A DNA stretch of 38,272 bases from Dimorphilus gyrociliatus (GCA_904063045.1 CAJFCJ010000121.1:1-38272); one strand, 5' to 3'; shown: positions 16,641 through 37,487, counted from the stretch's first letter. Notes: generated from the sequence alone by a model not told the origin. Numbers and translations: made by a program.

Positions 16641-17371
16641 ATCCTTTTTATTTTTCAACCTAGCTTGCCTTGAAGTTTAGTGCATTTTCCTTCTAAAATT
16701 CATTATAAAAATTATTATGTTTTAAATAGGATATATTGAATTGATATAATGAATATATTTCTAAACAGTAATTTCAATTTTCTATTGCATTGAACTCTTA
16801 CAGTAAGTTCTCATACACAGACTTTGTTAGATTATCAGTTTTCTCACAGTTTACTAATTTCATGCTGTCACATATCTGTTAGCATTATATAATTTTATCT
16901 AAGCTGGATTAGCTTGTGGCATGTTCCCACAGGATTTTCCATGTGTCTTATATATAAGGTGAATATGTTTTCACAGAAATCATTTATAGTTTGAAGATTA
17001 AGGAGTCAGCATCACATTAAAAATAGCTGGTCTTATGAACAGCTTCTACAATTCCTTTCAAAATATACATCCTTCAATGATAGAATGGTATGTAGATATG
17101 TCATTAAACAGGAAAGTGTGTTATATATATTTGGAATGTTTTATTCACATGGTTCATATTTAGTTTGAAGAAGGAGTCAAAATCACATTTAAAATACCCA
17201 ATTAAATGAACATCCCCTACAATTGCTGATGATATTAAAATGGTATGTACAAATTCTGATATACAGTATCATAATACATAGCACTTTCAATATGATATAT
17301 ATTAAAAAAAGACCTGAAGAAGTGAATTCCCTATTGGAATCCTTCAACCTCTCTGTAGGTGTAGGTTAATA

Positions 17372-17428
17372 GACCCTGATGAGTCCTTGGTCATAAAAAT
17401 AGAGAGGAGGACAAAACCATGGTAGGTC
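17372..17428 (+). ncRNA. Type I hammerhead ribozyme with a core mutation (GAAA to AAAA)
   Basis: GACC CTGATGA GTCC..GGAC AAAA CCATGG TA GGTC; identical to 36737-36793 except for the core G to A change. Confidence 0.8.
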
Positions 17429-19538
17429 AAGTTGGTAGGAAAAAAATTTAAGAAAAAAATTTTTTCTGTTGGAAATTGTTTTAAATGTCGATTTTGGTGT
17501 ATTTTTTCTTTGACTGCTTCCCAAAATCAACTGGGACTCTTGAAATGTGAGAATCCTGTTTCTCTTTTTTGATTTAGTCAAAAAAAAACCCTTTGCAAAC
17601 CCCAACAAGTAAAGAGAATGTGGAATGAGAGGAACTAATACATAAACCTTAATCAATGACTAAAACAAAACTTTTTCCATAAGATTGACTTTTTTCAATT
17701 CAAAATTAAATTTTTTGACTTTAGCTTTCAAAATTTTTTCTTTTTACTTTAAAAAAGGGATAAAGATTCTTAAATATGTACCTGTGGTGTAATTAACATT
17801 TTTGGTAAATTGCTAGAGTTTGTTGTGTTGATAATGTCTTGCTGTTAAAACCAAATGATGAAATTCTTTAGAGTCAGTATACACTTATGGTGATTTTAAA
17901 TTTCTGATGGTAGTAGTAATATATCTTTGTACATTTTTGATTACTTTTGTAAAAGCTTGTATAGTTTTGTACATTTTTGTATTTTTTAAAATATTGCTTA
18001 AAATAAGTTGTTGATGTTTTTATCATGGTGATTTTAAATTTTCTCATGGTTTTAGCTTGAGTATGAGTTTTTGCTTGAGTATGAGTTTTAGCCTGAGTTT
18101 GAGTTTGTTTTTTAGTTTGATTGTGAGTTTAAATTAAAATTTGAGTTTAATTTGTGTATTAAACTGGTTTTAATTTGATGTAAATATGGTTAGTAGTTTA
18201 CAGATTTTTTTTGTGATCTTTATAAAGGTTTCTATATTCTTCCCAAATCTTTTACATTTCTAATATTTATAAAAATCCCCTATTGTAGTATATTGTAGAG
18301 AACATTTTAAATATTCTCAGTAACTAACCTTTATTCTTAAGCTAAAATTAAAAAAATACTTTTCTTATCAATCTACTTCCAGTATAAACACCACCATATT
18401 TGACATTAAAACATTTCACCAATTTTAATATCACTCACTTCAAAAACTCACATATATTCTCTTAATTTTTTCCAATCCATTCATTAGCCAAAACAATGAA
18501 TCATAACTGGCTCAAACAAATGAATGTTGGAAAAGACTCTTTCAACTACCAATACCATAAATTGTAATCTTAATTCACTACATGGAATAATCCTTCCATT
18601 CCAGTAACAAACATAAATCATAAATCAATAAAGGAATTAGGAACCTCTCTATTCAGCATACAAAACACTCTTCCCAATCCATTCATTAGCCAAATCAAAC
18701 TATCTGGAATTAACTAAATGAATGTTGGCAAGAAACTTTTACACACAAAAACAGATTACCTAAGGCTTTCACACATTTACTTACAAATGATTTATTTAAC
18801 CCACTTTCCAATCCATTCATTAGCCAGAACAACCTATCACTTGGCAAAGTAAATGAATGTTGGAAAATACAATACAAGAAAAACAGGTTAGTCTTCAAAC
18901 AATATTATTTAATAATTTGCAAATTAACAATCCTCTAATCTTTAGCCATAAAATTAAATTAACCATACTTTCTACATAATACAACATATGTATCACACTT
19001 CATTCATTTACACTCACTTATTTTATATACTTTCAATTAATTAACCAATTCCTTTACACATACTTAATTCATCAACTAGCCATAAATAATAATACAATTC
19101 ATACTTTTATTTTTTCACTTTTTCAATTTTGAATTTTTACTTTTATTAAAACTTTTATTGTTATTCCATTCCTGGTTGCTACTATTTACCCAACTTATTT
19201 TATTTTATTCTATATCACTTTTCTTATTTTTTAGGTCTGCAATTTTTGTTTTTTCTGTCTTTGCTGTTTTTCCAAACTGTCAGTATATATATCCCCTCAA
19301 TTTACTGTTATTTATTCCTTACACTCTGATTCAAGTCCATAGATGCTTTCTTTAATAACTTGTTAATTTAAAAAGTTTTAAACTATTTTGGTCTCTTATT
19401 TTAATTTTTAATTATTTTTTAATTTAATTCCAAATTTTACTCCACAAGAATCTTTATCAACAAACAAATAAATAAATCAAAAATCTAGAGAGAAACTTCT
19501 TATAAGATTCTCAAACCTCTCTGTCATGTAGCTCAGTA

Positions 19539-19599
19539 GACCCTGAAGAGTCCCAGGTTTAAAAATTTAGTAGAGAGGGGGACGAAACCAAGGTAGGTC
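19539..19599 (+). ncRNA. Type I hammerhead ribozyme (intact core)
   Basis: GACC CTGAAGA GTCCC..GGGAC GAAA CCAAGG TA GGTC; predicted cleavage after GUA at 19595. Confidence 0.88.
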
Positions 19600-19920
19600 A
19601 AGTAGGTAGGAAAAAAATTTAAGAAAAAAATTTTTTCTGTTGGAAATTGTTTTAAATGTCAATTTTGGTGTATTTTTTCTTTGACTGCTTCCCAAAATCA
19701 ACTGGGACTCTTGAAATGTGAGAATCCTGTTTCTCTTTTTTGATTTAGTCAAAAAAAACCCTTTGCTAACCCTAACCATTTATACATTTATAATACAACA
19801 AAGTACAAATACTTGCATAATTCATTTTATTAAATTTTTCAAAATTTTATTGTATTTCAGTGCACAAAAGAAAGCAATCGTTTTAGCACATTAGTATGAA
19901 ATGTTATCTTAGCCTCATTG

Positions 19921-20215
19921 CTAACACTTGTCCCTACAGTTTTCACGTTCATTGCCAGGTACATTGTTACACTTAGTTAAGCAGTCCCATGTCTGTAAAA
20001 AACACATTGATTTTAATGTTGTTAATAATATATGTTACTCTTTTCAATACCTCTCCTGCTCCTCTCATATTTAATCTTTGTTGAAGTGCATTAATTAATT
20101 CTTTTCTTTCCATTTCTTTCAAAATGGATCTCAAAGTGTTTTCAGACAATGGCAGTGAAAAAGTCTGGAGAGAAAGACAAACAACCAAGCAAACAATTAG
20201 AAGTTTTTTCTCCAT
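19921..20215 (-). CDS. Secreted cysteine-rich peptide precursor (82 aa, 2 exons)
   Basis: Exon 20215-20039 encodes signal peptide MEKKLLIVCLVVCLSLQTFS plus a propeptide ending in KR. A 46-nt GT-AG intron (20038-19993) follows. Exon 19992-19921 encodes TWDCLTKCNNVPGNERENCRDKC*. There is a TATATAA near 20290 and an AATAAA downstream near 19830. Confidence 0.8.
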
Positions 20216-20293
20216 TTTATCAGAATGCAAAACTGTTTCCCTCAGAAAGAAAAGCAATATAAAAATGTCATTTTCTCTCCTGCCCTTATATAG

Positions 20294-20571
20294 ACCAGCT
20301 CAAAACTGGTTTAAAACAAGTTCTATTCTATAAATATAATGAAAGAATATTGTAGTTTTTAAAGAACTTTAAAACAAGTTCTATTTATTGTCAGTGTCTG
20401 AAAAAACAGAATGCACATACATTCAATAGATGAACAATGTTGAACTAATATTGCACTATGCTTGTATTGTAATTGTAGGCCTATGCCTTTTGTGTCAAGG
20501 TTTTTCAACCTACAATATTCTTTCATTATATTTATAGAATAGAACTTGTTTTAAACCAGTTTTGAGCTGGT
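20294..20571. repeat. 62-bp perfect inverted repeat (arms 20294-20355 and 20510-20571)
   Basis: ACCAGCTCAAAACTGGTTTAAAACAAGTTCTATTCTATAAATATAATGAAAGAATATTGTAG and its reverse complement. Confidence 0.9.
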
Positions 20572-20625
20572 TTCGTCCCCCTCTCTACTAAATTTTTAAA
20601 CCTGGGACTCTTCAGGGTCTACTGA
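20569..20625 (-). ncRNA. Truncated hammerhead fragment, inverted relative to 19539-19599
   Basis: Reverse complement of TCAGTAGACCCTGAAGAGTCCC..GGGGACGAAACC. The native 3' strand (TA GGTC) is missing. Confidence 0.8.
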
Positions 20626-21035
20626 AAAACAATACTACAGCAGAAAGAGAAATTGATCAATCAACAAGACCAGTTCCAATTAGAGCAACAGAAGAAATTC
20701 CACAAACATCAACTATTGCAGACAACACTATTGCTACAACACTAAGAGAACAAACTGCAATAACTACAACAAGTGATGAAGTAATTATTGAAGCTGCAGC
20801 CAGAGCAGAAGCAGCAACAACAGCATCAGCAGACACTGGAACAACTATTAAAATAAGTGATTGTAATGCAGTCAATTATACACAAACGGATATTGGTTTA
20901 TTAGAAGAATTGGGTATTAATTTAGAAATTGGCCAAGAAATTGAGATGGAAGAGATAAATGAAGTAGAAGAAGAAGAGGAAGAAATAGTAGATAAATTCT
21001 ACTTTGATTTACAAAAAAAAATGAAAGAAAAATAG
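20625..21035 (+). pseudogene. 5'-truncated Thr/Ala/Glu-rich ORF
   Basis: An open frame with no initiator (KNNTTAEREIDQSTRPVP...EEEEEEIVDKFYFDLQKKMKEK*) starts exactly at the hammerhead-fragment junction. Confidence 0.45.
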
Positions 21036-21046
21036 AGGTAGGTAAT

Positions 21047-21568
21047 ATGTTGATTGTTCAAAGAACTAATAATATTATTGTAGACACTGGTTCTTTAAAT
21101 ATAATTGATAAAACACAAAAAATATTTCTCAGAAAGGTAAAACCACAATTTACAAATGTTACTGATTATACCATTCTTACAGATCAATTTATTAAGTTAG
21201 GTGATAAAAAATGGGAAAAGGTACAATCTATGATTAAAACAGAAAAAAAAATACAAATATTTTGTATTGAAGATTTAAAAATGGGTGATTTACTTCCAAT
21301 TATAACTGGTTGGAAATTAATCACCAGTAATCTTTTTATATATTTAAAGAATATTCCAAAAGACATAGACATAAAAAAAATTGTTAAGCAGTTACCTTTT
21401 TCCAAAAATAATTTGTGTTTTACAAAAAAAACTTTTGACAAAGAAATTTGTCAAAATTTGAAAGTCATGGGATGTAAGTTATTAAATCATCCCAATGAAA
21501 TATGCAAAAAAGAGGAAACTCTTGTTATTAGATTGCTTAGAGAATTAATGTCTGCTGTTAAATGTTAA
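21047..21568 (+). CDS. Hypothetical intronless protein (173 aa)
   Basis: ORF begins 11 nt after the preceding stop; no domain recognised. Confidence 0.4.
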   Translation: MLIVQRTNNIIVDTGSLNIIDKTQKIFLRKVKPQFTNVTDYTILTDQFIKLGDKKWEKVQSMIKTEKKIQIFCIEDLKMGDLLPIITGWKLITSNLFIYLKNIPKDIDIKKIVKQLPFSKNNLCFTKKTFDKEICQNLKVMGCKLLNHPNEICKKEETLVIRLLRELMSAVKC

Positions 21569-21946
21569 TATGTTGTTCAATAATATTTGCTTTGTTTTTA
21601 GGCATTTGTATTAGTTATATATAAATTTATATCTATATTGTAATCTGTTTCATTTTTTAAATGTATATATTTTGGTTTGTTTGAAAATAATAAAAAAACT
21701 TTAAAATACAAAAGATAGTAATTATTCAATTTTATTATTTATCAATATTTTTTTCGTCAGGCTTTTACTTTCACTTAAAAAATTTCACTTTCACTGAAAA
21801 ATTTTTTTACAGGTTAATGTTTTTCTTTTCATGTGGGAAAATATTTCCAATTAGAATTTATAATACTATTATAATGACTTAAGACTGTTTTAAATTTTGT
21901 AAATATATATATATATATATATCTTTAGATGATATCATTAGTATCC

Positions 21947-22639
21947 TGTATAATGTTAATTAACATGTGTATATTTATGCATTTTATTGATAGTTTGAAT
22001 GTTATCTTGAAACTTTGGTTATATTTTACATGCTTGAACTCTATTATTTTATGCAACATATACATGTACATCTTAAAACCTACTCAAGAAAATGCTATAA
22101 CATTGGCCAAACATAAGTCTGATTAGTCAGCTTGAAGGCTCATCTTTAATTACCAATAAAGGTTTGGCCAAGTTATAATTTAATTAACTTGCCTAGGGTG
22201 TGGCCAAGTTATAATTCAATTAACCTTCCTAAATGTTCAACCTTGTAACATCCTGTTACTAAAGATAAATATGAACTACACATTTTGGCAACTGTAAAGT
22301 GATGATTGGATGTCAGAGGCAAACCTCAAAGTATATAAATCCTCACTATTCTCATTTGGCATGCAGCTTCCATCTGGACCCAAGGACCTGGGAAAATCAT
22401 CTGGAAACAACCTCTACTGGAACCATCCATCTACTCCTCAACATTAGAAGACAGTTTGGTAATTTGGCAACTTGCTTTTACAAACTATCTACTCTGCTAT
22501 CAAACTCTCATATTGTTACTTGCTTAAGTATTATTATTGGGAATAAACCGTTTTAATTTAAACATTTGTTTAAAGGTTGAGTAGAACCAGTACTGTTATA
22601 ACTTGCAAATGCATAGATTTTGCCAGCAAGAGCAGTACA
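21947..22639 (+). mobile_element. 5' LTR of the same family as 2400-3034
   Basis: TGTATAA...GTACA termini; matches the first LTR from 22011 onward; followed by a PBS. The exact 5' start is inferred. Confidence 0.85.
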
Positions 22640-22643
22640 AATT

Positions 22644-22661
22644 TGGCGCAGTCAACAGGAT
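22644..22661 (+). other. Primer-binding site, tRNA-Ser type
   Basis: TGGCGCAGTCAACAGGAT, 4 nt after the LTR, resembles the tRNA-Ser PBS TGGCGCAGTCGGTAGGAT of some insect gypsy-family elements. Confidence 0.75.
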
Positions 22662-22699
22662 AATATTTTGGTTTATTCAAAAGTTTTGAGAAAGTAAAT

Positions 22700-23334
22700 A
22701 TGGCAGAAGGAGGAAATGGAAATGCCACTGGGGCAGTTACAGACTCTAACCCTTCAACCCCAGCAACTCCAACAATTACAATTCAGCCAGCAGGAATGTC
22801 AGAAAGGCAACAAAGACTAATTGAAGACTATGATAGATTGGTGAGTGAAATGAAAAGAAATCGAATCACAATTCCAACAGATCATGGACATGGAACACAT
22901 CACCCAGCACAGAACCCAAATGTTGATATCACAACAGTTATTCAAGCATTAAGGGCTGCTTGGGACTGCCCTCAAAGAACTATTCTCAAGTTGTATGATG
23001 GAAGCAAGAGTGTTCAAAATTCAAGGAAGACTTTAATCAGGCATGTTATGCTTATGGTTGGATTGGTGAAGATGTTGTGAAAGCAAATCTTTTAGATTAT
23101 TTAACTGGTCCTGCAAAGGATTTGGTGTTGGCTCTGGATGGAGAGCCTACTGTGGAGGAAATATGGAAAGCCCTCCATGATGAATTTGATCTGGATCCTT
23201 TGGAGTATCAAGAGAAATTGCTTAACTTAAAGCAAATGAATGGCGAAAGTGTGGTTCAGTTTGTTAATAGAGCAAAGAAATTAATAAAGAGGTTTTCTCT
23301 GCCTAGACCATTTACTCAAATACATATTCTTTGA
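22700..23334 (+). pseudogene. gag: Retrotransposon gag, frameshifted and 3'-truncated
   Basis: Joining the two ORFs at CAAAATTC (near 23018) gives YDGSKSVQ-FKEDFNQACYAYGW..KANLLDYLTGPAKD..LKQMNGESVVQFVNR, which is Ty3/gypsy capsid-like. Confidence 0.75.
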
Positions 23335-23542
23335 ATGAAATACTGGTGTTTGTTGGTTAATTTTTACTGGAATTACATTTATTAAGACTACTTGTGGACG
23401 AACTTGAAAGGTTCTATTTGGACCAGTACTTTGGCACATTGGTAAATGATTGGAGAGGACAAATTTAATAGTGACGAACTAGGACTTCCTACAATTACAA
23501 TACAACAAAGTACAAGGACACAGGAGAATTTGTTTTAACAAC

Positions 23543-24165
23543 AGGGTTAGAGTTAGGTCTTGGGGTTAGGGATTAGCACAATCAGTACAGACTGGTAATC
23601 CCAAAAGTGCACACACACTTATAACCCTACTCAGCCAATAACTAGCCCTATTAATTTTCATTCACTGTCAATTTCTCTCTGTATCTCCAATAGGAGATAA
23701 AAAACTACTATCCTGATCATCCCCCACCCAGCTATTGGCCATGGTGAGAATTGTGTCATTGCTGTTGTCCAGGCTCTCTATGTTATTCACAATAGAGAAT
23801 TTGTTTTGTGGTTTATTGAAGACTGTTTTAATATGCCACCATGGGGATGGCCAACATTCTAATAGATTCAGAGTGTTGGTATTGTCCTCTTGAGGTGGAC
23901 CTTCAGTTCTTCCCTTTACTATAAGGCTACCCAATGATATCCCCAGTTTCAAGGCAATAATAGGCCTAATCGCTTTCAGTGGACTGTCATCATTAAGAGC
24001 ACTCCAGTGGTCCTTAAGTATTCTATTTACTTTATACCAAGGACTTGGATGGTAGACCACTAGTGGTACTATAGTAGTACTGTAGCAACCATGATCCTCA
24101 TTTAAGCCATAAGGAGTAACTGTATTAGCCTCTTTGATGTACCTTGCTTCCAAAGTCTGTAGGGT
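23543..24165 (-). mobile_element. 3' fragment of a Penelope-like element (GIY-YIG end, 3' UTR, telomere-complementary tail)
   Basis: LQTLEARYIKEANTVTPYGLN is a PLE GIY-YIG C-terminal motif, followed by PLVVYHP..ILKDHWSAL..PIIALKLGISLGSLIV. The tail is CCCTAACCCCAAGACCTAACTCTAACCCT at 23543-23571. Confidence 0.72.
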
Positions 24166-24202
24166 GGTTCAGGGACAGTTCGCCCCTGGACAGTTCGCCC
24201 CA
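24166..24202 (+). mobile_element. Isolated MULE terminal repeat
   Basis: GGTTCAGGGACAGTTCGCCCCTGGACAGTTCGCCCC is identical to the end at 27315. Confidence 0.75.
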
Positions 24203-24570
24203 GTGTTTTTATGGTAATATTCAAACAAAAGTTTATTAAATTCATTCCAAGGTTTTTCAGTAGCATCTCCAAAATGTTTATGCCATGTCATATTTGCTAT
24301 AGCCTGAATAGTTTGGGATGCCTGTGTAATAATAACAAATTGTCTTGTGTCAATATACAAATTTAATTCATGATTATTCCATATGAATTCTTTCAAAAAA
24401 ACATGTATATCATATCTGAAGTCTGTAACTACTTTTTTTCTATATGAACACTGTCTATTCATTTTTACAAATGTATCCTCTAAGCCCATGGATGAATAAG
24501 GATGAATGAAACCAATTAAAGGTGGAACCATTTCTAGAACTTTCAATTGTGTTAAAAGGTTACTTTGCAT
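24203..24570 (-). pseudogene. Unknown ORF truncated by the MULE terminus
   Basis: About 122 codons run without a stop into the TIR. Confidence 0.3.
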
Positions 24571-25044
24571 TGTTCAAACTTTGAAATTGTGAACTGTTAA
24601 ACTCTTAGGAAAGTATATAAACCCTTAGAATTTAACAGTTGTTAGCTTAGTTTTCTAACCTCTTTGATATTTTTAATACTGTTCTACTTTTACTTTCTAT
24701 TTTAGGGAGAATATATTATCTTCAATCAATTTCTTTTAAATTAATTATTATTTTTATCTATTTAGCATTTTATTTTTAAACTCAAAATTCTGACAGCTAA
24801 GTATTTTACCAATGATAAATTTGACAAAATCAGTGGGCAGAAGTATATAACCACATTATAACATTGTTTATGATTTAGCAAGTCCAATCTCTATGGTTAT
24901 CATAAGAGTTATGCCTTTAACCACTGTTATAACCATATATGTTTTAAAGACAATAGTTGTAGTTATAACAATATTATAACCACAAAATTCTAATAGCTAT
25001 GTGCTTTTTTCTATTAATAACTGAGTGTCTGTGTATAATATTTT

Positions 25045-25941
25045 ATGTTTAAGTATAGTTCAAACAGAACAAAGGAAGCAATAGATAAAACTATTGGAAC
25101 AACAATGAAAACCATTTGGAAAGGACTTGAACAATCATCAAGTACATTAAAATTTATTGATTTCCAGAAATGCTGTATGACAGAAAAAGATGGTCAAAAA
25201 CTTGGAAATCTCCTCAAAAAATGTTCTCAAATAGAAACAATAAGTTTATCAAAATGTTGGCATACCAAAGATGGATTTTTTAATATTTGTGATGGACTTG
25301 AAAAATCATCAAATACATTAAAATTTATTGATTTCAATGACTGTTGTTTGAATGAAGAGCAATGTTCAGCACTTGGAAATTTGCTCAAAAAATGTTCTAA
25401 AATAGAAACAATAAATATATCAAGAAGTTCAGATATCAGTAATGGATTTATTGCTCTTTGTGATGGACTTGAACAATCATCAAATACATTAAGGGTTTTT
25501 GATTTCAGTGGCTGCTGTTTGAATGAAGAGCAATGTTCAACATTGGGAAATTTGCTCAAAAAATGTTCTAAAACAGAAACAATAGATATATCAGGAAGTT
25601 GGTTTACAAGAAATGCAATTATTGCTATTTTTGATGGACTTGAACAGTCATCAGATGCATTAAAGTTTATTAATTTAAACTGTTGCTATTTAAATGAAAA
25701 GGAAAGTAGAGCACTTGGAAATTTTCTTAAAAAATGTTTTAAAATAGAAAAAATAAATTTATCAGGAAATCCATGTATGGGAAATGGATTTATTGCTATT
25801 TGTAATGGACTTAAACAATCATCCAATACATTAAGGCTTTTTGATATCAGTTGCTGTGATATGAATGATGAAGAGATTTCAAACCTGAAAAGTGTTTTTC
25901 CAAATGTTTGCTTAGCTGAAACATTCTCATTGGATGACTAG
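25045..25941 (+). CDS. RNI-like/NLR-type leucine-rich-repeat protein
   Basis: About five 56-aa repeats (TLKFIDF..CCLNEEQCSALGNLLKKCSKIETINIS..NGFIAICDGLEQSS) in a single exon. The N-terminus may lie in a missing exon. Confidence 0.8.
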   Translation: MFKYSSNRTKEAIDKTIGTTMKTIWKGLEQSSSTLKFIDFQKCCMTEKDGQKLGNLLKKCSQIETISLSKCWHTKDGFFNICDGLEKSSNTLKFIDFNDCCLNEEQCSALGNLLKKCSKIETINISRSSDISNGFIALCDGLEQSSNTLRVFDFSGCCLNEEQCSTLGNLLKKCSKTETIDISGSWFTRNAIIAIFDGLEQSSDALKFINLNCCYLNEKESRALGNFLKKCFKIEKINLSGNPCMGNGFIAICNGLKQSSNTLRLFDISCCDMNDEEISNLKSVFPNVCLAETFSLDD

Positions 25942-26249
25942 TGTGCACTTAGATATAGTAATACATCAAAACTTAGACATTAGCAATAAGGGTAGATTAG
26001 GAAGACTTCTATTTCATAGGAATTACATTGGTGCAACTTTAGAAAAACTTTTAATTCAAGAGTTAGCTTTTAGTACTTTAGAAAGAACTCTATTTTGCAA
26101 TATCATTCATCAACTGGTATTGATTTAGTTTATTGAATATTACAAGATTATACATTTTTTAATAACCCTTCTTTCCAGTGAGTTATTAGTTACAATTTTT
26201 GTATTGGCAGCCATATTTGATATTTGAAAGTGAATTTATTTTTGCAGAA

Positions 26250-27314
26250 ACTTAGTAATGGCACCTGTTTGTATTAATTGTAATAAAAGATTTTATGGCA
26301 GACAGAGAAAGATGAAATGCAGTGACTGCCAAGATTATGTCCATGCCAAATGCATCAAAGGTCTGTCTCTTTATATGTTTTTATTAAATTATTCACTTTT
26401 ATCATTTTCAATTTAGAATCTGAAAGAGTATTTTGCAATAATTGTGCAGAAAAGTTCAGGATTGAAGAAATTACATGTTCACTTTGTCATCATATCTGTA
26501 AAGGTGATATTTACTATGTAAAAACATACATTTATTTAACTTTGCTTAATATTACAGAAATGAAAGATGATAAGTGTTCTTCATGCAAAACTTTGAGTGA
26601 AAGATATTGTCTCATTAGTTTATCAGATGTGATTAATGATGATCCCACTGTAAAAGCTGCTCTGAGTTGTACTCATAATAACATGGTTAAAGACAATTGT
26701 AGTCTTAATGAAATTAACAATACTTCTAATATGGAGGAAAATTTATTGCATGAAAATGAAACTGAAAATAATGAGAATACTGAAAGCTCAGACAAATTTC
26801 ATATTATTATTGGTGGAAGTCGAAAAGGGAAAGATATTTTGACCAACAATGGCTATGCTTTTAATATAAAGTCTAGAAGTGACAAGAGAACCATCTGGAG
26901 ATGTTCTGTTAGAAATAAGAATATTCAATGTCCAGTTATTATTCAACAAAAAGGAAATATTTTCATAAAGAGTAAACATGAACACAATCATAACAAAAGG
27001 AAAAGCCTTATTGTGAATATTTCTGCTAGAAAAGAATTGAGAGCAATCTGTAATGCAGACATCAGGTCATCTGGAAGAGCAATTGCTGAAGATCTATTAA
27101 TTAATTTAAATCAAAGTGAAAATAACCTACCAAAACTGGAAAATCTGAGGAGATTAGCTAATATCAATAGGCAAAAATCAAGGCCTAAAGAACCAAACGA
27201 AATTGATTTTGAACTTAATACAACATTTATACCAGATGATTTTCTTCAAAGTGATATTGTTGTAAGAAATCAAAGAGTTTTATTATTTGCTTCTAAGCAC
27301 CAGCTATCTTTATT
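26250..27314 (+). pseudogene. 5' half of a PHD-FLYWCH-MULE transposase
   Basis: CINC..C..C..HAKC PHD exon, FLYWCH (GSRKGKDILTNNGYAFNIK..WRCSVRNK..C..HEH) and FIPDDFL..VLLFASKHQLSLL. It stops at the TIR at 27315, before the DDE domain. Confidence 0.8.
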
Positions 27315-30300
27315 GGTTCAGGGACAGTTCGCCCCTGGACAGTTCGCCCCAGGACAGTTCGCGCCATTTTAGAGACAGTTCGCCCCATTTTAAGGGACAG
27401 TTCGCCCTATTTTAGGAGACAGTTCGCCCCATATGTTAAAGGATAGCTGACATACTTTTTTGCTCTTCTTTATAACTTTTGAAGATAAGATATGAGATAT
27501 AAATGATAAATGAATGATATTTAGTAATTCTATTTGTATTATCAAGATGGAAATAACTAAGAAAACAAGTACATGATGTAAAATGTAAAATGAAATGTTA
27601 TGCAATATTCAACTGAACTAAATGATTCAAAAGATCATCTAGACTAATTTCCCTCTTTTCAAACTTATCCCAGTAGCTGAAAATATCAAACTGTAGATAT
27701 GGTGTAGTGACATTTCGGCCCAGGACATTTCAGCCCACTTTGGGACATTTTGGCCCAGGACATTTCGGCCCACTTTGGGACATTTCAGCCCACTTTGGGA
27801 CATTTCGGCCCACTTTGGGACATTTCCGCCTAAAATATTTCACCCCATGTTAGAAAAATAACATTTTAGATTTTGAAAAGGCTATATGGATGGCACTTAA
27901 AGACCAGTTTCCTAATTCTGACCTTCAAGGATGCTCTTTTCATTTCAAGCAAGCAATTTTGAGAAACATTCAGGTAGATTAAACAATACTGCAAACAATT
28001 AAATATTCATAGGAAATTTTTTGTTAGAAACTTGGATACATTAATGATTATAAAGAAAATGAATATAAAGGGAAAATGTTACAAAAATTGATGTGTTTGG
28101 CCTATCTTCCAGCAAAATTTATTGAACAAAAGTTTTTTCAAATAAAAGAAGAACTTTGTGAAAAGAAATTCTTTTCAGATTTGCTTGATTATATTGAAGA
28201 AACATTTATTAAAAGCAGCATTTGGCCTCCTAAATTCTGGTCTGTCTATCAATTGGCTGTGAGAACAAACAATCATGTTGAGGCATGGCATTCCAGGCTT
28301 AACAAAAACTTGAACATGGATGAGAACTTGTATTCCCTCATAAAAGAATTAAGAAGAGAAGCTGAGTTAGTAGAGATCTTTGAAAAGTTATTGTCCGAGA
28401 AAAAGTTAAGAAAGATACAAAAGAAGAAGTATCAAGATTTACAATTCAAAATATTTCAGTTGTGGAGTAAATTTGAAGAAAGAGAACTGAGTTTGGATGA
28501 ATTATTGGATGGACTTGTACATTTAAATATTTTTTAAAAGTTAACATTTCTTACTCTGCATTTTTGTTATTGTATGTTATATCATTCTTTTACTGTTTTG
28601 AAATTGTTTCCTTTCTTATTGAAAAAATAAACATAATCCATCATAAAATGGAAAGTTATATTCTTGAATATTAATGCTCTAAAATGGGCCAAAATGTCCT
28701 GGGCCGAAATGTCCTGGGCCGAAAATGCCCCAAAGTGGGCCGAAATGTCCAAAGTGGGCCGAAATGTCCCAAAGTGGGCCGAAATGTCCAAAGTGGGCCG
28801 AAATGTCCAAAAAGTGGGCCGAAATGTCCTGGCCCCTGTAGATATTCATATTTTTTTCTCTGCATTTTCTTCAACTTTTTCTCAGATAGCTGTATCTTAT
28901 AAACTTGTACCAACTCTGCTTCCCTTGCCAGCTCTTGTACCAAATTATACAAATTTCCATTTGCTTGTAAAGATTTATTCAATCTTGAGTGCCATCCCTC
29001 AACATTGTTGTTTGTCCTCACTGCCAATTGATAGATAGACCAATACTTTTGCTTCCATATTTTGCTATTGATATATGTTTTTTCAATATAATCCAAAAGA
29101 TCACTGTACACATTTTCTTCCAACAGCTTCATCTTTATTTCATAAAACTTTGAAGTGATGAATTCTTGGGGCAGATAAGGTAGACACATCAACTTTCTTA
29201 GCATTTTTCCATAATGACTCTTCTCATTATAATCATTTATATAGCCAAGTTTCTAGTGTTATACAAAGTATGAGAGGTATATTAAAAAGAGTTAAACATC
29301 AAACTATACCTGTATATTTCGAAGGATTGATTGCTTGAAATGAAAACAACATCCTTGTAAGTCAACTCCTGAAAAAACTTGTGTTACTGCAGTCCAAAGA
29401 CCTTTCTCAAAATCTAAAACAACTTTTTGTAGTTTTCTGTCACTTATTAAACAATCTACCGCCTATGAATGAAAAAACAAACATTCATTTCTTTTAAGAT
29501 ATATATAATAATTTTACCTTGAAAACTTCAATGTAATGCTTCCTCTTCTTTCCACTCATTAAAATAAATAAAAGTGGAACTTGAAGATATTCACCATTGT
29601 TTTTAATGAAGCCATGAATAGAGAATAGTTGATAGAATGGCTCTTTAACCACTTTAAAAGTCCCATCAATAAACCATATTTTACACTTAGCCAACAATTC
29701 CAATTGATATTTAGTTCCAAATATGATGCTTCTATGTTTTTCGCCTTGTATGTCTTTTAAAAAGAAATTATTTGGGATCTGATCCATTTCTAGTTCAAAA
29801 AATAAGTTATCTGGGTGTTTTGGCTTTTGATTTTCTTTATATCTGTTTGCTGATCTTTTAATTGATTCAATTTGAGGCAAAGAATTAGCATTGTCTCTAA
29901 AGTCCATTGCAACATCTTCAGCCAATCTTTTTCCAGACCTTTCACTTCTTTCCAAAATGAGTTTCTTTAAATGTACTCTTGCTTTGATTCTTTGTTCCAG
30001 ACTCTTTTCATTATTAAAATGAGTATGATCTTTTTTCACAATGAATCTTGAACCTTTTTGGATAATGTATGTTGTACAGCTTTGTGTTTTTGATCTCTGA
30101 GTACATTTCCAAGTTTTAGATGTTTTTGTAGTATTCTTAATTGTGTATGAGAAGTTCTTATGTAATAAAATATCTTTTCCTTTCCTACTTCCTCCTTCTA
30201 TTATTTGAAAAGTATCAACATTTTCAGCATCAGAACTGACTTCCTGACTTTTATTGAATGAAATTTCATCATGTACATCAATTCTTCTTTCTTGATCATT

Positions 30301-31109
30301 ATCTGATGAATGACTTCTTCCTTCCTCATTTTCCACAAAGTTATTTTCAAAATCAAATGATAATGTTAACTGTAAGCAGAATTTCATGTTAATAATTGGA
30401 GAAAGATTAAGTTTAATACATCACCTGATTTTCTTCCTGAAAGGTTTTATTAACAGTAGACATATGTTTAGGACTACTTTTATCAAATCCATTTTCTTCC
30501 ATCATTTGATCTACTCTTCTTATTCTGATAACAACTTGTTGTTTTGTAATATTGAAACAATCAACACAATAATCAGCATCTGCTTTATAAAAAAATTCAT
30601 TGAAATAAATGAAAAAAAATAAATTTGATTACCTTTTGAGCACTTTTGGTGATAAAAGTGTTTACATAATTTGCATCTTATTTTTTGCTGATTCCAATAA
30701 AATTTCCTCATACAACACCAACAGGTTTTTAAATTCATTTTTACACCAATCAATTCAATAGTTAAACCAATCTCTGTAAAGTATCATTCAAAATAATAAA
30801 ACTTCATTTAATTCAAAAGACTTTTCCTTCAGAGGAACAGGAAATAGATTTGTAAAAAAATCTGGTAACAGTAACATTAATGAGGTATGTTTTGCTGAGA
30901 ATATCAAAGATATAAAAATAACAGTAAAATAACAAATAACAAAATGTAATAAGTAGAACATCACTCTTTCCCTGCTGAAATCTTGAAAGGGACAAAGTAT
31001 CCCTGAAATGGGGCGAACTGTCCCCCAAAATGGGGCGAACTGTCCCTAAAATGGGGCGAACTGTCTCTAAAATGGGGCGAACTGTCCAGGGGCGAACTGT
31101 CCTGACCCC
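27315..31109 (-). mobile_element. Mutator-like element with GGACAGTTCGCCC subterminal repeats; transposase interrupted
   Basis: Inverted repeat arrays at 27315-27430 and 31010-31109. The spliced PHD-FLYWCH-DDE gene runs on the minus strand from ~30750 to the stop at 27598 and is split by the 27701-28836 insertion. No TSD found. Confidence 0.8.
27701..28836 (+). mobile_element. Internally deleted MULE nested in the previous element
   Basis: 9-bp TSD TGTAGATAT at 27692-27700 and 28837-28845; GGACATTTCGGCCCAC arrays at both ends. It holds only the C-terminal transposase half (DFEKAIW..GCSFH..RTNNHVEAWH). Confidence 0.88.
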
Positions 31110-31134
31110 AAGCAGGGCATAGGTAGTAACAGGA

Positions 31135-31350
31135 GGGGGGGGCAACAGAAAATGTCCCCAAGTGAGATTTTTGAAAGCAACGTTTCGGATTGCAAAATGG
31201 TTAGGGTGAGTGAAGTAGCCATTGATTTGTAGTTAGGGGGGGGGGGGTTCCTTCTAAGGGTCAAGGGTAATCAAAAAGGTTAGGGAGTGACAAGGGCTAG
31301 GTTAGGGTTAGGGTTAAATCATGCATTTGGGGACGTTTTCTGTCGTAACC
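31135..31350. mobile_element. Mutator-type MITE containing telomere-like repeats
   Basis: Flanked by direct repeats AGTAACAGGA (31125-31134 and 31351-31360), with inverted repeat ACAGAAAA(T/C)GTCCCCAA and an internal GGTTAGGGTTAGGGTT. Confidence 0.7.
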
Positions 31351-31830
31351 AGTAACAGGAATTCAGTCATGAATCAACCCTCTTAGTGAACAGGTCAAGT
31401 ATTACTTAAGGATACAGTTATATTATTCTTACAATTTGGTTCTATATCCCTCCCCCTTCAATTCTACATCTCTCTTCTAAGTGGCTTACCTGTACTTACC
31501 TACAACCCCACAGCAGGAAAGTACAATCCCATTAAAAGTTATTTGATAATACTTTGTTTGGAGTTTTTAAGACAATTTTATTTTTTTCACTCTACCAAAT
31601 GCATGACAATATTAGTTGTGATGAGTAGAGAAGTTGCTAAGTGAAATAGGTTGTAGCTTGATTTTAGATTGAAAAATGTTTAAAAAGAATAATTATTATT
31701 AGAAAAGTTAGAGTTGTTAAAAGTTAAATTCCTTCAAAAATGAGTAATTAAAAAACTCATTAACTTTATTAAATTAACTCTATAAGCAGTCCTGATGATC
31801 AACTGTCTAAGGATTAAGTAAGTATACTAG

Positions 31831-33701
31831 AAGTCATCTTCCTGGGCATCATCTCTATAGCAGTCATCTTCCTGGGGATCATCTCTATAGCAGTCATGTT
31901 CCTGGGGATCATCTCTATAGCAGTCATGTTCCTGGGGATCATATCCACAAAAGTCATCTTCCTGGGGATCATATTCACAAAAGTCATCTTCCTGGAGATC
32001 ATCTCTATAGCAGTCATCTTCCTGGGGATCATCTCTATAGCAGTCATGTTCCTGGGGATCATCTCTATAGCAGTCATGTTCCTGGGGATCATATCCACAA
32101 AAGTCATCTTCCTGGGGATCATATCCACAAAAGTCATCTTCCTGGAGATCATCTCTATAGCAGTCATCTTCCTGGGGATCATCTCTATAGCAGTCATGTT
32201 CCTGGGGATCATCTCTATAGCAGTCATGTTCCTGGGGATCATATCCACAAAAGTCATCTTCCTGGGGATCATATTCACAAAAGTCATCTTCCTGGAGATC
32301 ATCTCTATAGCAGTCATCTTCCTGGGGATCATCTCTATAGCAGTCATGTTCCTGGGGATCATCTCTATAGCAGTCATGTTCCTGGGGATCATATCCACAA
32401 AAGTCATCTTCCTGGGGATCATATCCACAAAAGTCATCTTCCTGGAGATCATCTCTATAGCAGTCATCTTCCTGGGGATCATCTCTATAGCAGTCATGTT
32501 CCTGGGGATCATCTCTATAGCAGTCATGTTCCTGGGGATCATATCCACAAAAGTCATCTTCCTGGGGATCATATCCACAAAAGTCATCTTCCTGGAGATC
32601 ATCTCTATAGCAGTCATCTTCCTGGGGATCATCTCTATAGCAGTCATGTTCCTGGGGATCATCTCTATAGCAGTCATGTTCCTGGGGATCATATCCACAA
32701 AAGTCATCTTCCTGGGGATCATATCCACAAAAGTCATCTTCCTGGAGATCATCTCTATAGCAGTCATCTTCCTGGGGATCATCTCTATAGCAGTCATGTT
32801 CCTGGGGATCATCTCTATAGCAGTCATGTTCCTGGGGATCATATCCACAAAAGTCATCTTCCTGGGGATCATATTCACAAAAGTCATCTTCCTGGGGATC
32901 ATATCCACAAAAGTCATCTTCCTGGGAATCATCTCTATAGCAGTCATCTTCCTGGGGATCATATCCACAAAAGTCATCTTCCTGGGGATCATATCCACAA
33001 AAGTCATCTTCCTGGAGATCATCTCTATAGCAGTCATCTTCCTGGGGATCATCTCTATAGCAGTCATGTTCCTGGGGATCATCTCTATAGCAGTCATGTT
33101 CCTGGGGATCATATCCACAAAAGTCATCTTCCTGGGGATCATATTCACAAAAGTCATCTTCCTGGAGATCATCTCTATAGCAGTCATCTTCCTGGGGATC
33201 ATCTCTATAGCAGTCATGTTCCTGGGGATCATCTCTATAGCAGTCATGTTCCTGGGGATCATATCCACAAAAGTCATCTTCCTGGGGATCATATCCACAA
33301 AAGTCATCTTCCTGGAGATCATCTCTATAGCAGTCATCTTCCTGGGGATCATCTCTATAGCAGTCATGTTCCTGGGGATCATCTCTATAGCAGTCATGTT
33401 CCTGGGGATCATATCCACAAAAGTCATCTTCCTGGGGATCATATCCACAAAAGTCATCTTCCTGGAGATCATCTCTATAGCAGTCATCTTCCTGGGGATC
33501 ATCTCTATAGCAGTCATGTTCCTGGGGATCATCTCTATAGCAGTCATGTTCCTGGGGATCATATCCACAAAAGTCATCTTCCTGGGGATCATATTCACAA
33601 AAGTCATCTTCCTGGAGATCATCTCTATAGCAGTCATCTTCCTGGGGATCATCTCTATAGCAGTCATGTTCCTGGGGATCATCTCTATAGCAGTCATGTT
33701 C
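31831..33701. repeat. 30-bp minisatellite with a 150-bp higher-order repeat
   Basis: Units ATCTCTATAGCAGTCAT(C/G)TTCCTGGGGATC and ATAT(C/T)CACAAAAGTCATCTTCCTGG(G/A)GATC in a 3+2 pattern, about 62 units, ending at the N. Confidence 0.95.
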
Positions 33702-33702
33702 N
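33702..33702. other. Assembly gap or ambiguous base
   Basis: A single n sits at an abrupt change of sequence type. Confidence 0.8.
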
Positions 33703-34313
33703 GGGTTAGGTCTTGGGGTTAGGGTTTTAACGCCCTAGAGTAGCACTCTCACTTTCTCCGTGAGTGATACCCTTGGAAGGTTGCGTTCCACATTGAAGAA
33801 TAACTATTCTGAATGACGGCAGGTTAATCTCTTAAGAACTGGGACCCTGAATTGTCAATTAGACGTGATACAAGGACCGTTCCTCCGATTACGGGAACCG
33901 GATGAGATACACCCGCTCAACTCAGAAAATCGCATCCAATAAAGGAAAAATAAGGACTTTCGGTTTCGAGCATGGTGCATTGCGGGATTCGAACCCACGT
34001 CTCCTGATTACATGTCAGTTATGTTACCACTACACCAAATACCTCCATGACGAACCTACCATCCAGATCTTCCTTATAGGATTTGTCTTTGGCGTCTTAA
34101 CCAAGTAATCATTTCTTAATGATTATCAAGCAGATAATTATTCGACAGAGAACCTCAGAGCCTTCCAAGTCTTTCACCCCTGAAGATAGGATCTGGCAGG
34201 GTTAGGTCTTGGGGTTAGGGTTTTAACGCCCTAGAGTAGCACTCTCACTTTCTCCGTGAGTGATACCCTTGGAAGGTTGCGTTCCACATTGAAGAATAAC
34301 TATTCTGAATGAC
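33703..34313 (-). mobile_element. tRNA-containing SINE-like unit with a telomere-complementary 3' tail (one 496-bp unit plus a 115-bp partial copy)
   Basis: 33703-33817 is repeated at 34199-34313. On the minus strand both copies end in AAAACCCTAACCCCAAGACCTAACCC. CpG is retained. Confidence 0.6.
33973..34043 (-). pseudogene. tRNA-like sequence (Pol III A and B boxes)
   Basis: GGTATTTGGTGTAGTGGTAACATAACTGACATGTAATCAGGAGACGTGGGTTCGAATCCCGCAATGCACCA. D, anticodon and T arms fold, the acceptor stem is 5/7, and the loop CATGTAA lacks U33. Confidence 0.7.
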
Positions 34314-34494
34314 AGGGTTAGGTTTGCAAAGGGTTTTTTTTTTGACTAAATCAAAAAAGAGAAACAGGATTCTCACATTTCAAGAGTCCCAGTTGATTTT
34401 GGGAAGCAGTCAAAGAAAAAATACACCAAAATCGACATTTAAAACAATTTCCAACAGAAAAAATTTTTTTCTTAAATTTTTTTCCTACCTACTT

Positions 34495-34555
34495 GACCTA
34501 CCATGGTTTCGTCCCCCTCTCTACTAAATTTTTAAACCTGGGACTCTTCAGGGTC
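34495..34555 (-). ncRNA. Type I hammerhead ribozyme (intact)
   Basis: GACC CTGAAGA GTCCC..GGGAC GAAA CCATGG TA GGTC on the minus strand. Confidence 0.9.
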
Positions 34556-36736
34556 TACTAAGCTGCATGAAAGAGAGGTTTGAGAATCTTAATAAGAAGT
34601 TTCTCTCCAGATTTTTGATTTATTTATTTGTTTGTTGATAAAGATTCTTGTGGGGTAAAATTTGGAAATTAAATTGAAAAAAAATTAAAAAATTAAAATA
34701 AGAGACCAAAATAGTTTAAAACTTTTTAAATTAACAAGTTATTAAAGAAAGCATCTATGGACTTGAATCAAAGTGTAAGGAATAAATAACAGTAAATTGA
34801 GGGGATATATATACTGGCAGTTTGGAAAAACAGCAAAGACAGAAAAAACAAAAATTGCAGACCTAAAAAATAAGAAAAGTGATATAGAATAAAATAAAAT
34901 AAGATAAAATAAAATAAAATAAGTTGGGTAAATAGTAGCAACCAGGATTGGAATAACAATAAAAGTTTAAATAAAAGTAAAAATTCAAAATTGAAAGAGT
35001 GAAAAAAATAAAAGTATGAATTGTATTATTATTTATGGCTAGTTGATGAATTAAGTATGTGTAAAGGAATTGGTTAATTAATTGAAAGTATATGAAATAG
35101 GTGAGTGTAAATGAATGAAGTGTGATACATATGTTGTATTATGTAGAAAGTATGGTTAATTTAATTTTATGGCTAAAGATTAGAGGATTGTTAATTTGAA
35201 AATTATTAAATAATATTGTTTGAAGACTAAACTGTTTTTCTTGTATTATATTTTCCAACATTCCTTTACTTTGCCAAGTGATAGGTTGTTCTGGCTAATG
35301 AATGGATTGGAAAGTGGGTTAAATAAATTATTTGTAAGTAAATGTGTGAAAGCCTTAGGTAATCTGTTTTTGTTTGTAAAAGTTTCTTGCCAACATTCAT
35401 TTAGTTAATTCCAGATAGTTTGATTTGGCTAATGAATGGATTGGGAAGAGTGTTTTGTATGCTGAATAGAGAGGTTTAATTCCTAATTCCTTTATTGATT
35501 TATGATTAATGTTTGTTACTGGAATGGAAGGATTATTCCATGTAGTGAATTAAGGTTACAATTTATGGTATTAGTAGTTGAAAGAGTCTTTTTCCAACAT
35601 TCATTTGTTTGAGCCAGTTATGATTCATTGTTTTGGCTAATGAATGGATTGGAAAAAAAATTAAGAGAATATATGTGAGTTTTTGAAGTGAGTGATATTA
35701 AAATTGGTGAAATGTTTTAATGTAAAATATGGTGGTGTTTATACTGGAAGTAGATTGATAAGTAAAGTATTTTTTTAAATTTCAGCTTAAGGACAAAGGT
35801 TAGTTACTGAGAATATTTAAAATGTTCGCTACAAACTATATATTCAACCTAATAAAAATATACTACAATAGGGGATTTTTATAAATTTTAGAATTGTAAA
35901 AGATTTGGGAAGAATATAGAAACATTTATAAAGATCACAAAGAAATATGTAAACTACTAACCATATTTACATCAAATTAAAACCAGTTTAATACACAAAT
36001 TAAACTCAAATTTTAATTTAAACTTACAATCAAACTAAAAAACAAACTCAAACTCAGGTTAAAACTCATACTCAAGCAAAAACTCATACTCAAGCTAAAA
36101 CAATGAGAAAATTTAAAATCACCATGATAAAAACATCAACAACTTATTTTAAGCAATATTTTAAAAAAATACAAAAATGTACAAAACTATACAAGCTTTT
36201 ACAAAAGTAATCAAAAAAGTACAAAGATATATTACTACTACCATCAGAAATTTAAAATCACCATAAGTGTATACTGACTCTAAAGAATTTCATCATTTGG
36301 TTTTAACAGCAAGACATTATCAACACAACAAACTCTAGCAATTTACCAAAAATGTTAATTACACCACAGGTACATATTTAAGAATCTTTATCCCTTTTTT
36401 AAAGTAAAAAGAAAAAATTTTGAAAGCTAAAGTCAAAAAATTTAATTTTGAATTGAAAAAAGTCAATCTTATGGAAAAAGTTTTGTTTTTAGTCATTGAT
36501 TAAGGTTTATGTATTAGTTCCTCTCATTCCACATTCTCTTTACTTGTTGGGGTTTGCAAAGGGTTTTTTTTTGACTAAATCAAAAAAGAGAAACAGGATT
36601 CTCACATTTCAAGAGTCCCAGTTGATTTTGGGAAGCAGTCAAAGAAAAAATACACCAAAATCGACATTTAAAACAATTTCCAACAGAAAAAATTTTTTCA
36701 AAAAATTTTTTTCTTAAATTTTTTTCCTACCTACTT

Positions 36737-36793
36737 GACCTACCATGGTTTCGTCCTCCTCTCTATTTTTATGACCAAGGACTCATCAGGGTC
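36737..36793 (-). ncRNA. Type I hammerhead ribozyme (intact)
   Basis: GACC CTGATGA GTCC..GGAC GAAA CCATGG TA GGTC on the minus strand. Confidence 0.9.
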
Positions 36794-37487
36794 TATTAAC
36801 CTACACCTACAGAGAGGTTGAAGGATTCCAATAGGGAATTCACTTCTTCAGGTTTTTTTTTAATATATATCATATTGAAAGTGCTATGTATTATGATACT
36901 GTATATCAGAATTTGTACATACCATTTTAAAATCATCAGCAATTGTAGGGGATGTTCATTTAACTGGGTATTTTAAATGTGATTTTGACTCCTTATTCTT
37001 CAAACTAAATATGAACCATGTGAATAAAACATTCAAAATATATATAACACACTTTCCTGTTCAATGACATATCTACATACCATTATATCATTGAAGGATG
37101 TATATTTTGAAAGGAATTGTAGAAGTTGTTCATAAGACCAGCTATTTTTAAGGTGATGTTGACTCCTTAATCTTCAAACTATAAATGATTTCTGTGAAAA
37201 AAACATTTATAATATATATAAGACACATGGAAAATCCTGTGGGAACATGCCATAAGCTAATCTGGCCTAGATAAAATTATATAACACCAATGTGGAAACA
37301 TGAAGTTAGTTAGTAAACTTTAAAATCACTGATAATCAAATTAAATCTGAGTGTGAGAAAGTTCTACAAACATGTTAAAGAGAGATAAGAGTTTGTTGTA
37401 ACTTGATATCAGCATTATAGTATTAGTGTATGTACTGAATTTCAAATCTCTATCTTAATTAACAACAATTAGTCAATAAACTGCAGT

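Follow-up and report, generated by a model that had tools for sequence, protein, structure and literature searches.

The 38,272-bp contig 121 of Dimorphilus gyrociliatus, an animal with an AT-rich genome of 77.9 Mb, was analyzed over its entire length (hereafter the window). It contains two inverted copies of a repeat family with paired hammerhead ribozymes and telomere-repeat tails, which a first-pass annotation of the same DNA had described as a candidate telomeric retrozyme. We consider it probable, although by no means certain, that the family consists of retroelements that are neither coding nor autonomous and whose relatives are the telomere-adding Penelope-like elements (PLEs) of the Athena, Coprina and Terminon type, and that they are copied by the mechanism described below. 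The elements are non-coding, their hammerheads are of the PLE type and appear suited to acting as dimers, and they appear to have been added to telomeres in the orientation expected of telomere-primed reverse transcription, all in agreement with the first-pass annotation.

A non-coding family with telomere-repeat tails

Copy 1 (15374..19777, plus strand) and copy 2 (34314..37485, minus strand) correspond to each other in 13 collinear blocks that are 92-99% complementary, with 95% identity overall, which bears out the earlier statement that they are inverted copies. The two direct repeats of ~270 bp reported in each copy are also present, at 17330-17606 and 19500-19777 in copy 1 and at 36532-36835 and 34314-34591 in copy 2; we refer to the upstream one as repeat A and to the distal one as repeat B. 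Copy 1 is internal and decayed, and is composed of a 5′ array of ~340-nt units (15374-16799, plus strand), a 5′ region, repeat A, a leader, a body, repeat B and a tail. Copy 2 is the outermost unit at the chromosome end, where it is capped by the telomere, and is 5′-truncated relative to the copies at loci L003 and L005. Positions 16800 and 37370, which had been taken as the ends of the element, turned out to be merely the points at which two subfamilies cease to resemble each other. The subfamily of copy 1 extends to ~15374 through the ~340-nt repeat units, and this 5′ extension has counterparts that are 95-98% identical in L023 (contig 105), contig 12 and contig 207. Copy 2 represents the other subfamily, which has a different upstream part; it is cut by the telomere at ~37486, while its relatives in L003 and L005 continue for at least 875 nt. 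The 5′ parts of the two subfamilies thus differ, and each is free of open reading frames (ORFs) over more than 1 kb.

The 3-kb stretch that had been described as the element is not a natural unit either. Long copies have an A-type ribozyme unit upstream, and at three loci (L023, L024 and L026) the 5′ part and repeat A are found by themselves, followed by a separate telomere tail. Since this 5′ unit is found solo with its own tail, the 3-kb stretch is two chained mobile units that are also able to move separately. No ORF above 97 codons was found in the copies, consistent with the claim that no long ORF lies between the ribozymes. Searching the element body for a decayed reverse transcriptase (RT) or endonuclease (EN), a check that could have turned the family into an ordinary dead PLE, revealed no trace of either at E-values up to 10, and no PLE RT was found just upstream within the same unit among the ~45 repeats examined. 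Given that no copy contains an RT, copying must occur in trans, as had been suggested. At least 62 hammerhead motifs of the family were detected in the genome with a model (R1) that we built from 30 of its hammerhead copies, and the copies bearing a hammerhead number at least 60.

Contig 121 is closed by 787 bp of mixed TTAGGG and TTAGG units (37486-38272, G strand on plus) that reach its final base and have a 17-nt higher-order period, a point absent from the first-pass annotation. The gap between copy 2 and this array is 0 nt, and copy 2 is oriented with the 5′ end against the telomere and the 3′ end facing the centromere, as telomere-primed copying predicts. A member of the family occupies the outermost position at two true chromosome ends, the right end of contig 121 and the left end of contig 27. 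The latter starts with a 489-nt C-strand telomere array, followed directly by a copy truncated at a position matching 18813. Within this terminal array (L006, 417-437), 16 nt equal to the element's final bases (an A-run plus CCCTTTGC) lie between telomere repeats; this mini-copy looks like an abortive start.

Throughout the genome, the distal repeat continues after ..CCCTTTGC into 0.5-4.5 CCCTAA units and then into unrelated flanks, often 5′-truncated copies of the same family (down to 90 nt) or other tailed elements. Copies are 5′-truncated at many points and stacked head to tail, and the exact tail junction is present 20 times in the genome compared with 0 times in a reversed control. Both tails reported for the window, CTAACCCTAACC and AAACCTAACCCT, were confirmed, that of copy 2 (AAACCTAACCCT) being located at 34314..34325 on the minus strand. 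A telomere-complementary 3′ tail is therefore present as described, but it appears to derive mostly from the telomeric primer and not from a tail encoded in the RNA. Beyond its tail, copy 2 is joined to an older neighboring unit (34197..34313, minus strand), the end of a different tailed element that was truncated on its 5′ side; in L008 a family copy is likewise followed by this unit, cut elsewhere. The mapping of genomic copies that had been recommended showed that the family is enriched on contigs with telomere arrays, being present on 8 of the 13 contigs that have arrays of at least 8 perfect repeats when 1.4 would be expected (P about 7e-6), and all four copies located within 5 kb of an array have the expected orientation. 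Telomere-repeat 3′ ends, 5′ truncation and head-to-tail terminal arrays are hallmarks of Athena, Coprina and Terminons (PMC8557442, PMC6431247).

Paired hammerheads and the block between cut site and tail

All four hammerheads described for the window were found. On the plus strand, copy 1 has motif A at 17372..17428 (predicted cut 17424/17425, 98 bits with R1) and motif B at 19539..19599 (core intact, stem III loop AA, predicted cut 19595/19596, 107 bits). On the minus strand, copy 2 has motif B at 34495..34555 (predicted cut after 34499, 110 bits) and motif A at 36737..36793 (predicted cut after 36741, 102 bits), both intact. The claim that every repeat holds a minimal type I hammerhead requires one correction, as the core is intact in only three of the four: motif A of copy 1 reads GGAC-AAAA-CC, in which the catalytic G12 has been changed to A at a CpG site (17413). 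Stem III is ACCAUGGU in three of the four motifs, as had been noted, including both motifs of copy 2. The hammerhead model search suggested earlier gave E-values of 1e-25 to 1e-28 for the four motifs with our own R1 model (98-110 bits), but the Rfam models RF00163 and RF00008 reached only 16-30 bits, below their gathering scores of 34 and 48.5. Such low scores are expected for motifs whose helix III has 3 bp and a 2-nt loop and whose loop II is 18-24 nt long. A tRNA was the sole Rfam match at gathering thresholds. With a structural descriptor applied to ~170 kb (the window plus other loci), the only complete minimal type I hammerheads that we found were three in the window.

Of 30 distinct copies, 24 have an unchanged core (CUGANGA ... 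GAAA, H at the cut site), and the remaining 6 have A in place of G12. Helix cells are paired in 99% of cases, with four compensatory pairs across subfamilies that are 65-95% identical, in accordance with the claim that the ribozymes vary while keeping their pairing. None of 500 shuffles reached the observed level of compensation and slid controls gave at most 2, in an alignment that was itself fitted to the model. One of the four is the stem II variant that distinguishes the two ribozymes (U-A in type A, C-G in type B). Judging from this conservation, the hammerheads are real as conserved structures. A type III reading of motif A, drawn from the Rfam alignment, was rejected, as its helix III would have just 2 pairs and its upstream hairpin is missing in type B. 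The only other comparable motif in the window is a fifth, broken type B hammerhead (20565-20629, minus strand), identical up to GAAACC and then interrupted by a 272-nt insert (20297-20568) with terminal inverted repeats of ~59 nt; a TATA-like box and a small signal-peptide gene, on the minus strand, follow closely downstream of it.

The two types are distinguished by their cores and loops, type A having CUGAUGA and a stem III loop that is mostly GU, and type B having CUGAAGA and a loop that is mostly AC. ACCGUGGU and ACCACGGU are exact complements of each other, and the loops of copy 2, which are AU in both motifs, likewise pair perfectly, although every loop change is a CpG transition and many copies share descent. 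When motifs were cofolded, the energy gain (ddG) was -12.5 kcal/mol for A+B, which formed a double hammerhead, compared with -8.2 kcal/mol for A+A and -5.4 kcal/mol for B+B (no hammerhead fold), and monomer motifs do not fold as hammerheads (z about 0). In these models, the complementary GU/AC loops predict an A/B double hammerhead. The absence of a hammerhead fold in monomers, together with the A/B dimer fold, is consistent with the tendency of PLE motifs to act as dimers (PMC4209133). A candidate pseudoknot is present in both types, in which CCUCUCU, located 18-26 nt before stem I, could pair with the invariant AGAGAGG of loop II (17340-17348 with 17401-17407, and 19510-19518 with 19572-19578 in copy 1); no covariation was seen in this pairing, both sides being invariant.

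We compared repeats A and B within seven elements over a block, R, defined as extending from the first base after the predicted cut through ..UUUGC (171-201 nt). In copy 1, R of repeat A is located at 17425..17596 on the plus strand, where it ends in ..TTTGC and includes a terminal hairpin (U6-GAU..UC-A8), and R of repeat B with its tail at 19596..19777 (R 19596-19766; tail TAACCCTAACC 19767-19777). In copy 2, on the minus strand, the blocks of repeats B and A are at 34326..34498 and 36556..36740, respectively. Four of the seven elements have no substitutions between their two R blocks, namely L003, the contig 51 element, the contig 114 element and copy 2, in which two indel events in A/T runs were found. 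The blocks of copy 1 are 2 substitutions and 1 indel apart, and the remaining two elements have 7 and 10 substitutions. The median difference in R between different elements is 13, and the best match of every repeat A is repeat B of its own element, despite the divergence between subfamilies.

The limits of this identity are sharp. On the upstream side, A and B last differ in the stem III loop, at 5-6 nt from the cut. On the downstream side, identity stops exactly after UUUGC, where repeat A continues into AAACCCCAAC and the leader, and repeat B into (A/T)AACCCTAACCC. The internal telomere-like motif AAACCCCAAC (17597..17606 on the plus strand in copy 1) follows R in every A repeat, and is a candidate annealing site for a telomeric primer. 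As these limits correspond to the ribozyme cut and the RT start, R acts like the repeat of a long terminal repeat (LTR) element, and an R without substitutions is what one would expect from copying a template whose end or ligated joint is the ribozyme cut. The cut-to-cut lengths reported earlier, 2171 nt for copy 1 and 2242 nt for copy 2, are correct, and the R comparisons suggest that this 2.2-kb RNA probably takes part in copying. The 5′ ends of genomic copies showed no clustering at the cut site; they are spread, with one or two located 5-6 nt upstream of it. In L022 (1437-1470, contig 35), a 5′-truncated copy begins (G)TGGTA|GGTC, 5-6 nt before the predicted cut and right after telomere repeats, and a copy on contig 44 (85253) has the same start, going by coordinates.

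Two further parts of the element are conserved. A module resembling a C/D-box small nucleolar RNA (snoRNA) is located 485 nt after every type A motif, at 17847..17915 in copy 1 (plus strand; C box AUGAUGA at 17855-17861, D box CUGA at 17904-17907, terminal stem ACCA/UGGU) and at 36236..36304 in copy 2 (minus strand, 80 bits). In 8 distinct copies with unalignable interiors, the two boxes (C, RUGAUGA; D, CUGA) and the terminal stem do not vary, the closing pair being A-U, G-U or G-C, and 14 of the 15 genome matches of a model of the module are inside family copies. Against Rfam, the module scored 23-29 bits, short of gathering thresholds of 38-45, and different copies matched different families. 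Kinetoplastid telomerase RNA employs a C/D domain (PMC10061497), a resemblance that does not count as evidence. In addition, the body of copy 1 contains three conserved hairpins (18465..18869, plus strand) with invariant arms UUCCAAUCCAUUCAUU / AAUGAAUGUUGGAA and z-scores of -2.6 to -4.3; no covariation was detected in these, both sides being invariant.

A proposed copying mechanism and competing explanations

The window contains an RT fragment (5775..6854, plus strand) that represents the N-terminal RT region of a PLE lineage whose ORFs are giant and lack a detectable endonuclease. Members of the lineage were found at 12 loci, with frames of 794-2414 aa that are ~45% identical to the fragment, and no GIY-YIG match was obtained at any of the 12. 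Hammerheads scoring 36-42 bits on R1 are located 3.3-4.4 kb downstream at 5 of these 12 loci, while R1 found nothing at E-values up to 10 at the loci of PLEs with an endonuclease (EN+), whose hammerhead differs in sequence from that of the family. Because of this difference, the lineage without detectable endonuclease is the best candidate for the enzyme acting in trans, although the link is circumstantial. The giant-ORF RT loci, contig 98 (where two tails in the 40-48 kb region are 7.1 kb apart) and contig 80 were judged from coordinates only, and no repeat common to the family and the examined RT loci was found. Several intact EN+ PLE families are also present in the genome. One EN+ PLE, in L052 (RT plus GIY-YIG, 4728-bp tandem unit), has a different minimal hammerhead (6395-6440) ~640 nt before a telomere-like tail (7020-7065), and another EN+ family (L065, 4014-4622) adjoins a 600-nt TTAGGG array.

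We propose that, in a read-through transcript, the A and B motifs would fold into a double hammerhead and both sites would be cut. A telomeric 3′ end would anneal at the AAACCC motif beside UUUGC, where an RT supplied in trans, most likely by the giant-ORF PLE lineage without detectable endonuclease, would start. The RT would copy R as far as the 5′ end made by the ribozyme, and would then cross the nick held by the hammerhead helices, or a ligated joint, into hammerhead B, the body, the leader and the second R, often carrying on into the A unit. Telomerase would afterwards re-cap the chromosome end. Such a mechanism would account for the A/T polymorphism right after UUUGC, for the variable tails (mostly primer) and the solo A units, for a diverged copy with a B-like motif before the internal junction, and for the copy beginning 5 nt before the cut. 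A bolder version, in which the double hammerhead of two ribozymes 2.2 kb apart excises a paired or circular RNA with a C/D small nucleolar ribonucleoprotein (snoRNP) module, which a telomerase-related RT then copies onto chromosome ends, seems doubtful to us at present. If true, the family would combine the retrozyme and the telomeric retroelement in one hybrid, would lengthen telomeres beside telomerase, and would provide the first case of ribozyme cleavage setting a strand-transfer point, like the retroviral R region.

Several observations weigh against the reading that we favor. The full-length element lacks a defined true 5′ end, and among copies farther from telomere arrays only 2 of 5 are oriented as expected, the other 3, copy 1 included, having the opposite orientation. 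Cleavage, dimer action and strand transfer are deduced from DNA only, and PLE hammerheads are poor cleavers in vitro and dispensable for insertion of PAc, the Poseidon PLE of Anolis (PMC4209133, PMC11167929). The identity of R might stem from gene conversion. No shared 3′ end links the proposed partner RT to the family, and the exact tail signature was not found near giant-ORF loci. Finally, the EN+ PLEs of this genome also carry telomere-like tails and adjoin telomere repeats, so that endonuclease-driven insertion into telomere repeats has to be considered as well.

Gene conversion confined to the most similar part of the element is the main rival for the R-copying step. It forms part of an explanation in which the hammerheads are passengers, the template being an uncleaved full-length RNA on which RT starts internally at repeat B, as in PAc. 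PAc does mainly use uncleaved RNA, with RT starting within it (PMC11167929), and the sequence downstream of hammerhead B is kept in every copy of the family, monomers are not hammerhead-shaped (z about 0) and G12 has been lost in 6 of 30 motifs. However, mere passengers would not be expected to keep their cores and helices across subfamilies that are 65-95% identical, with four compensatory pairs, or to have complementary GU/AC loops fixed by type. In three independent subfamilies, moreover, the identical block has one limit no more than 4 nt from the cut and the other precisely at UUUGC, while conversion tracts with random ends would at times include the loop 5 nt away. Overall, this explanation appears rather unlikely. 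Alternatively, insertion may not be primed by chromosome ends at all, the GIY-YIG endonuclease of an EN+ PLE nicking telomere repeats instead. Endonucleases of the silkworm elements TRAS and SART nick telomere repeats. Many EN+ copies here are intact, they end in telomere-like tails (L052:7020-7065), one adjoins the 600-nt TTAGGG array in the right orientation (L065), and several family copies are flanked by interstitial arrays. The family hammerhead nevertheless resembles those beside the endonuclease-less lineage and not those of EN+ PLEs, and both the outermost position of the family at two contig-end telomeres and the 16-nt abortive copy within a terminal array fit poorly with nicking. We consider this route unlikely, although sequence alone cannot separate it from end-primed copying.

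The route of a true retrozyme, in which the 2.2-kb RNA is ligated to a circle and telomere-primed rolling-circle reverse transcription is the sole means of spread, has several observations in its favor. The double hammerhead would bring both termini of the excised RNA into contact, the two repeats have identical R blocks, one copy starts 5 nt before the cut site, and on contig 27 a B-like hammerhead of one diverged copy leads into the internal junction and leader, as if copied from a circle or tandem. Other hammerhead families of this genome, moreover, form tandem arrays (626-839 nt). This route is hard to reconcile with the fact that most long copies have an A-type hammerhead and 5′ region upstream of the second R, parts that a circle would lack, and with the ability of the A unit to move alone. 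The family has no tandem arrays, 2.2 kb exceeds the known circles of animal retrozymes five- to tenfold (PMC7229834), and the circle, too, is read from DNA; spread by this route only is distinctly unlikely. It is also conceivable that the stretch is the 3′ terminal module of a giant autonomous Terminon-like element, its copies being ordinary 5′-truncated products. The undefined 5′ end of the family, the giant-ORF RT fragment 8.5 kb upstream on the same strand, the co-oriented stacks shared with such RTs on contigs 51 and 3, and a ratio of repeats to RTs of about 45 to 12 could be understood in this way. Yet the intervening DNA is a mosaic of segments that recur elsewhere with other neighbors, and includes a tail (11050-11065). 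On contigs 68 and 76, intact giant-ORF copies terminate in a hammerhead class of their own, with no repeat of the family close by, and the two subfamilies have differing ORF-less 5′ parts of more than 1 kb. We regard a giant element of this kind as highly improbable.

The family bears on the role of hammerheads in PLEs, an open question. The sole biochemical study found PLE hammerheads dispensable (PMC11167929), and the limits of R, from predicted cut to RT start, are a genomic footprint that argues for cleavage in copying and is directly testable. The family also joins two literatures, those of retrozymes and of telomere-adding PLEs, in an animal with ordinary TTAGGG telomeres, and offers short, defined RNA parts for a reconstituted telomere-addition assay (the 16-nt minimal 3′ end, R and the GU/AC loops).

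Genomic setting and comparison with known systems

Stacked units are oriented on the plus strand in the left part of contig 121 and on the minus strand in the right part, and the ends of other units are marked by short telomere-repeat stretches at 11050-11065 (plus strand) and 31298-31313 (G strand). A FLYWCH/MULE-type DNA transposon (7179-9929), with 16-bp tandem repeats in inverted orientation at both ends, is located within an array of ~183-nt repeats that follows the RT fragment. A 30-bp tandem array at 31828-33701 consists of 62 copies with a higher-order period of 150 bp, and both of its strands are open for more than 600 codons.

Plant LTR retrozymes (PMC4918200) resemble the family in having a non-coding body between direct repeats with a hammerhead in each, an RT from elsewhere and a repeat segment that is identical in young copies. 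The family differs in that its motifs are minimal type I and not type III, only the part after the cut is kept identical, it is targeted to telomeres, and the cut-to-cut RNA is 2.2 kb as opposed to 0.6-1 kb. No primer-binding site, polypurine tract or 4-bp target duplication, as are typical of plant LTR retrozymes, was seen when the copies were read by eye. Animal non-LTR retrozymes, which are derived from PLE repeats and thought to be mobilized by PLEs, share type I hammerheads, a non-coding nature and low G+C content with the family (PMC7229834; bioRxiv 10.64898/2026.07.22.740005). However, the family occurs as units of 0.8 and 2.2 kb with tails and 5′ truncation instead of an array of 170-400-nt monomers; its motifs are 2.2 kb apart, and no tandem monomers of that size with one hammerhead each were found among its copies. 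The classic animal retrozyme layout is seen in other hammerhead families of this genome, which form tandem arrays with periods of 626, 698, 675 and 839 nt beside telomere repeats (contig 3, 5259-11689 and 36733-48655; contig 59, 123248-129646; contig 195, 6235-9663).

PAc is similar in having an apparent fixed RT start downstream of the hammerhead within a longer RNA, and in that its repeats arise from the mode of copying (PMC11167929). It differs in its RT-EN ORF, its AT-rich insertion sites and a hammerhead that is dispensable in vitro, and the identical block of our family begins at the predicted cut site, unlike in PAc. HeT-A of Drosophila telomeres (PMC5537684) is likewise telomere-specific, lacks its own RT and is arranged head to tail with its 3′ end toward the centromere, but it belongs to the non-LTR elements, has an ORF for gag, a poly(A) tail and no ribozyme, and resides in a host without telomerase.

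The closest parallels are with EN-deficient PLEs, that is, Athena and Terminons of bdelloid rotifers and Coprina of fungi, which also have a hammerhead near the 3′ end, are 5′-truncated by telomere repeats and form head-to-tail arrays at chromosome ends (PMC8557442, PMC6431247). The family shares two characteristics of this group, namely a 3′ end in reverse-complement telomere repeats close to a hammerhead and 5′-truncated head-to-tail arrays at chromosome ends, and lacks the third, an ORF for a PLE-clade RT without GIY-YIG. Further differences from EN-deficient PLEs are the absence of any other ORF, the position of the hammerhead 171-201 nt before the tail instead of adjoining it, the presence of two diverged hammerheads with complementary stem III loops, and a host that is an animal with TTAGGG-type telomeres. 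Having no ORF and no RT remnant, the family was filed as a non-autonomous relative of the EN-deficient PLEs and not as a member of them. The description as a telomeric retrozyme was therefore partly right: a circular retrozyme goes beyond the DNA evidence, which points to a non-autonomous, telomere-adding relative of Penelope-like elements.

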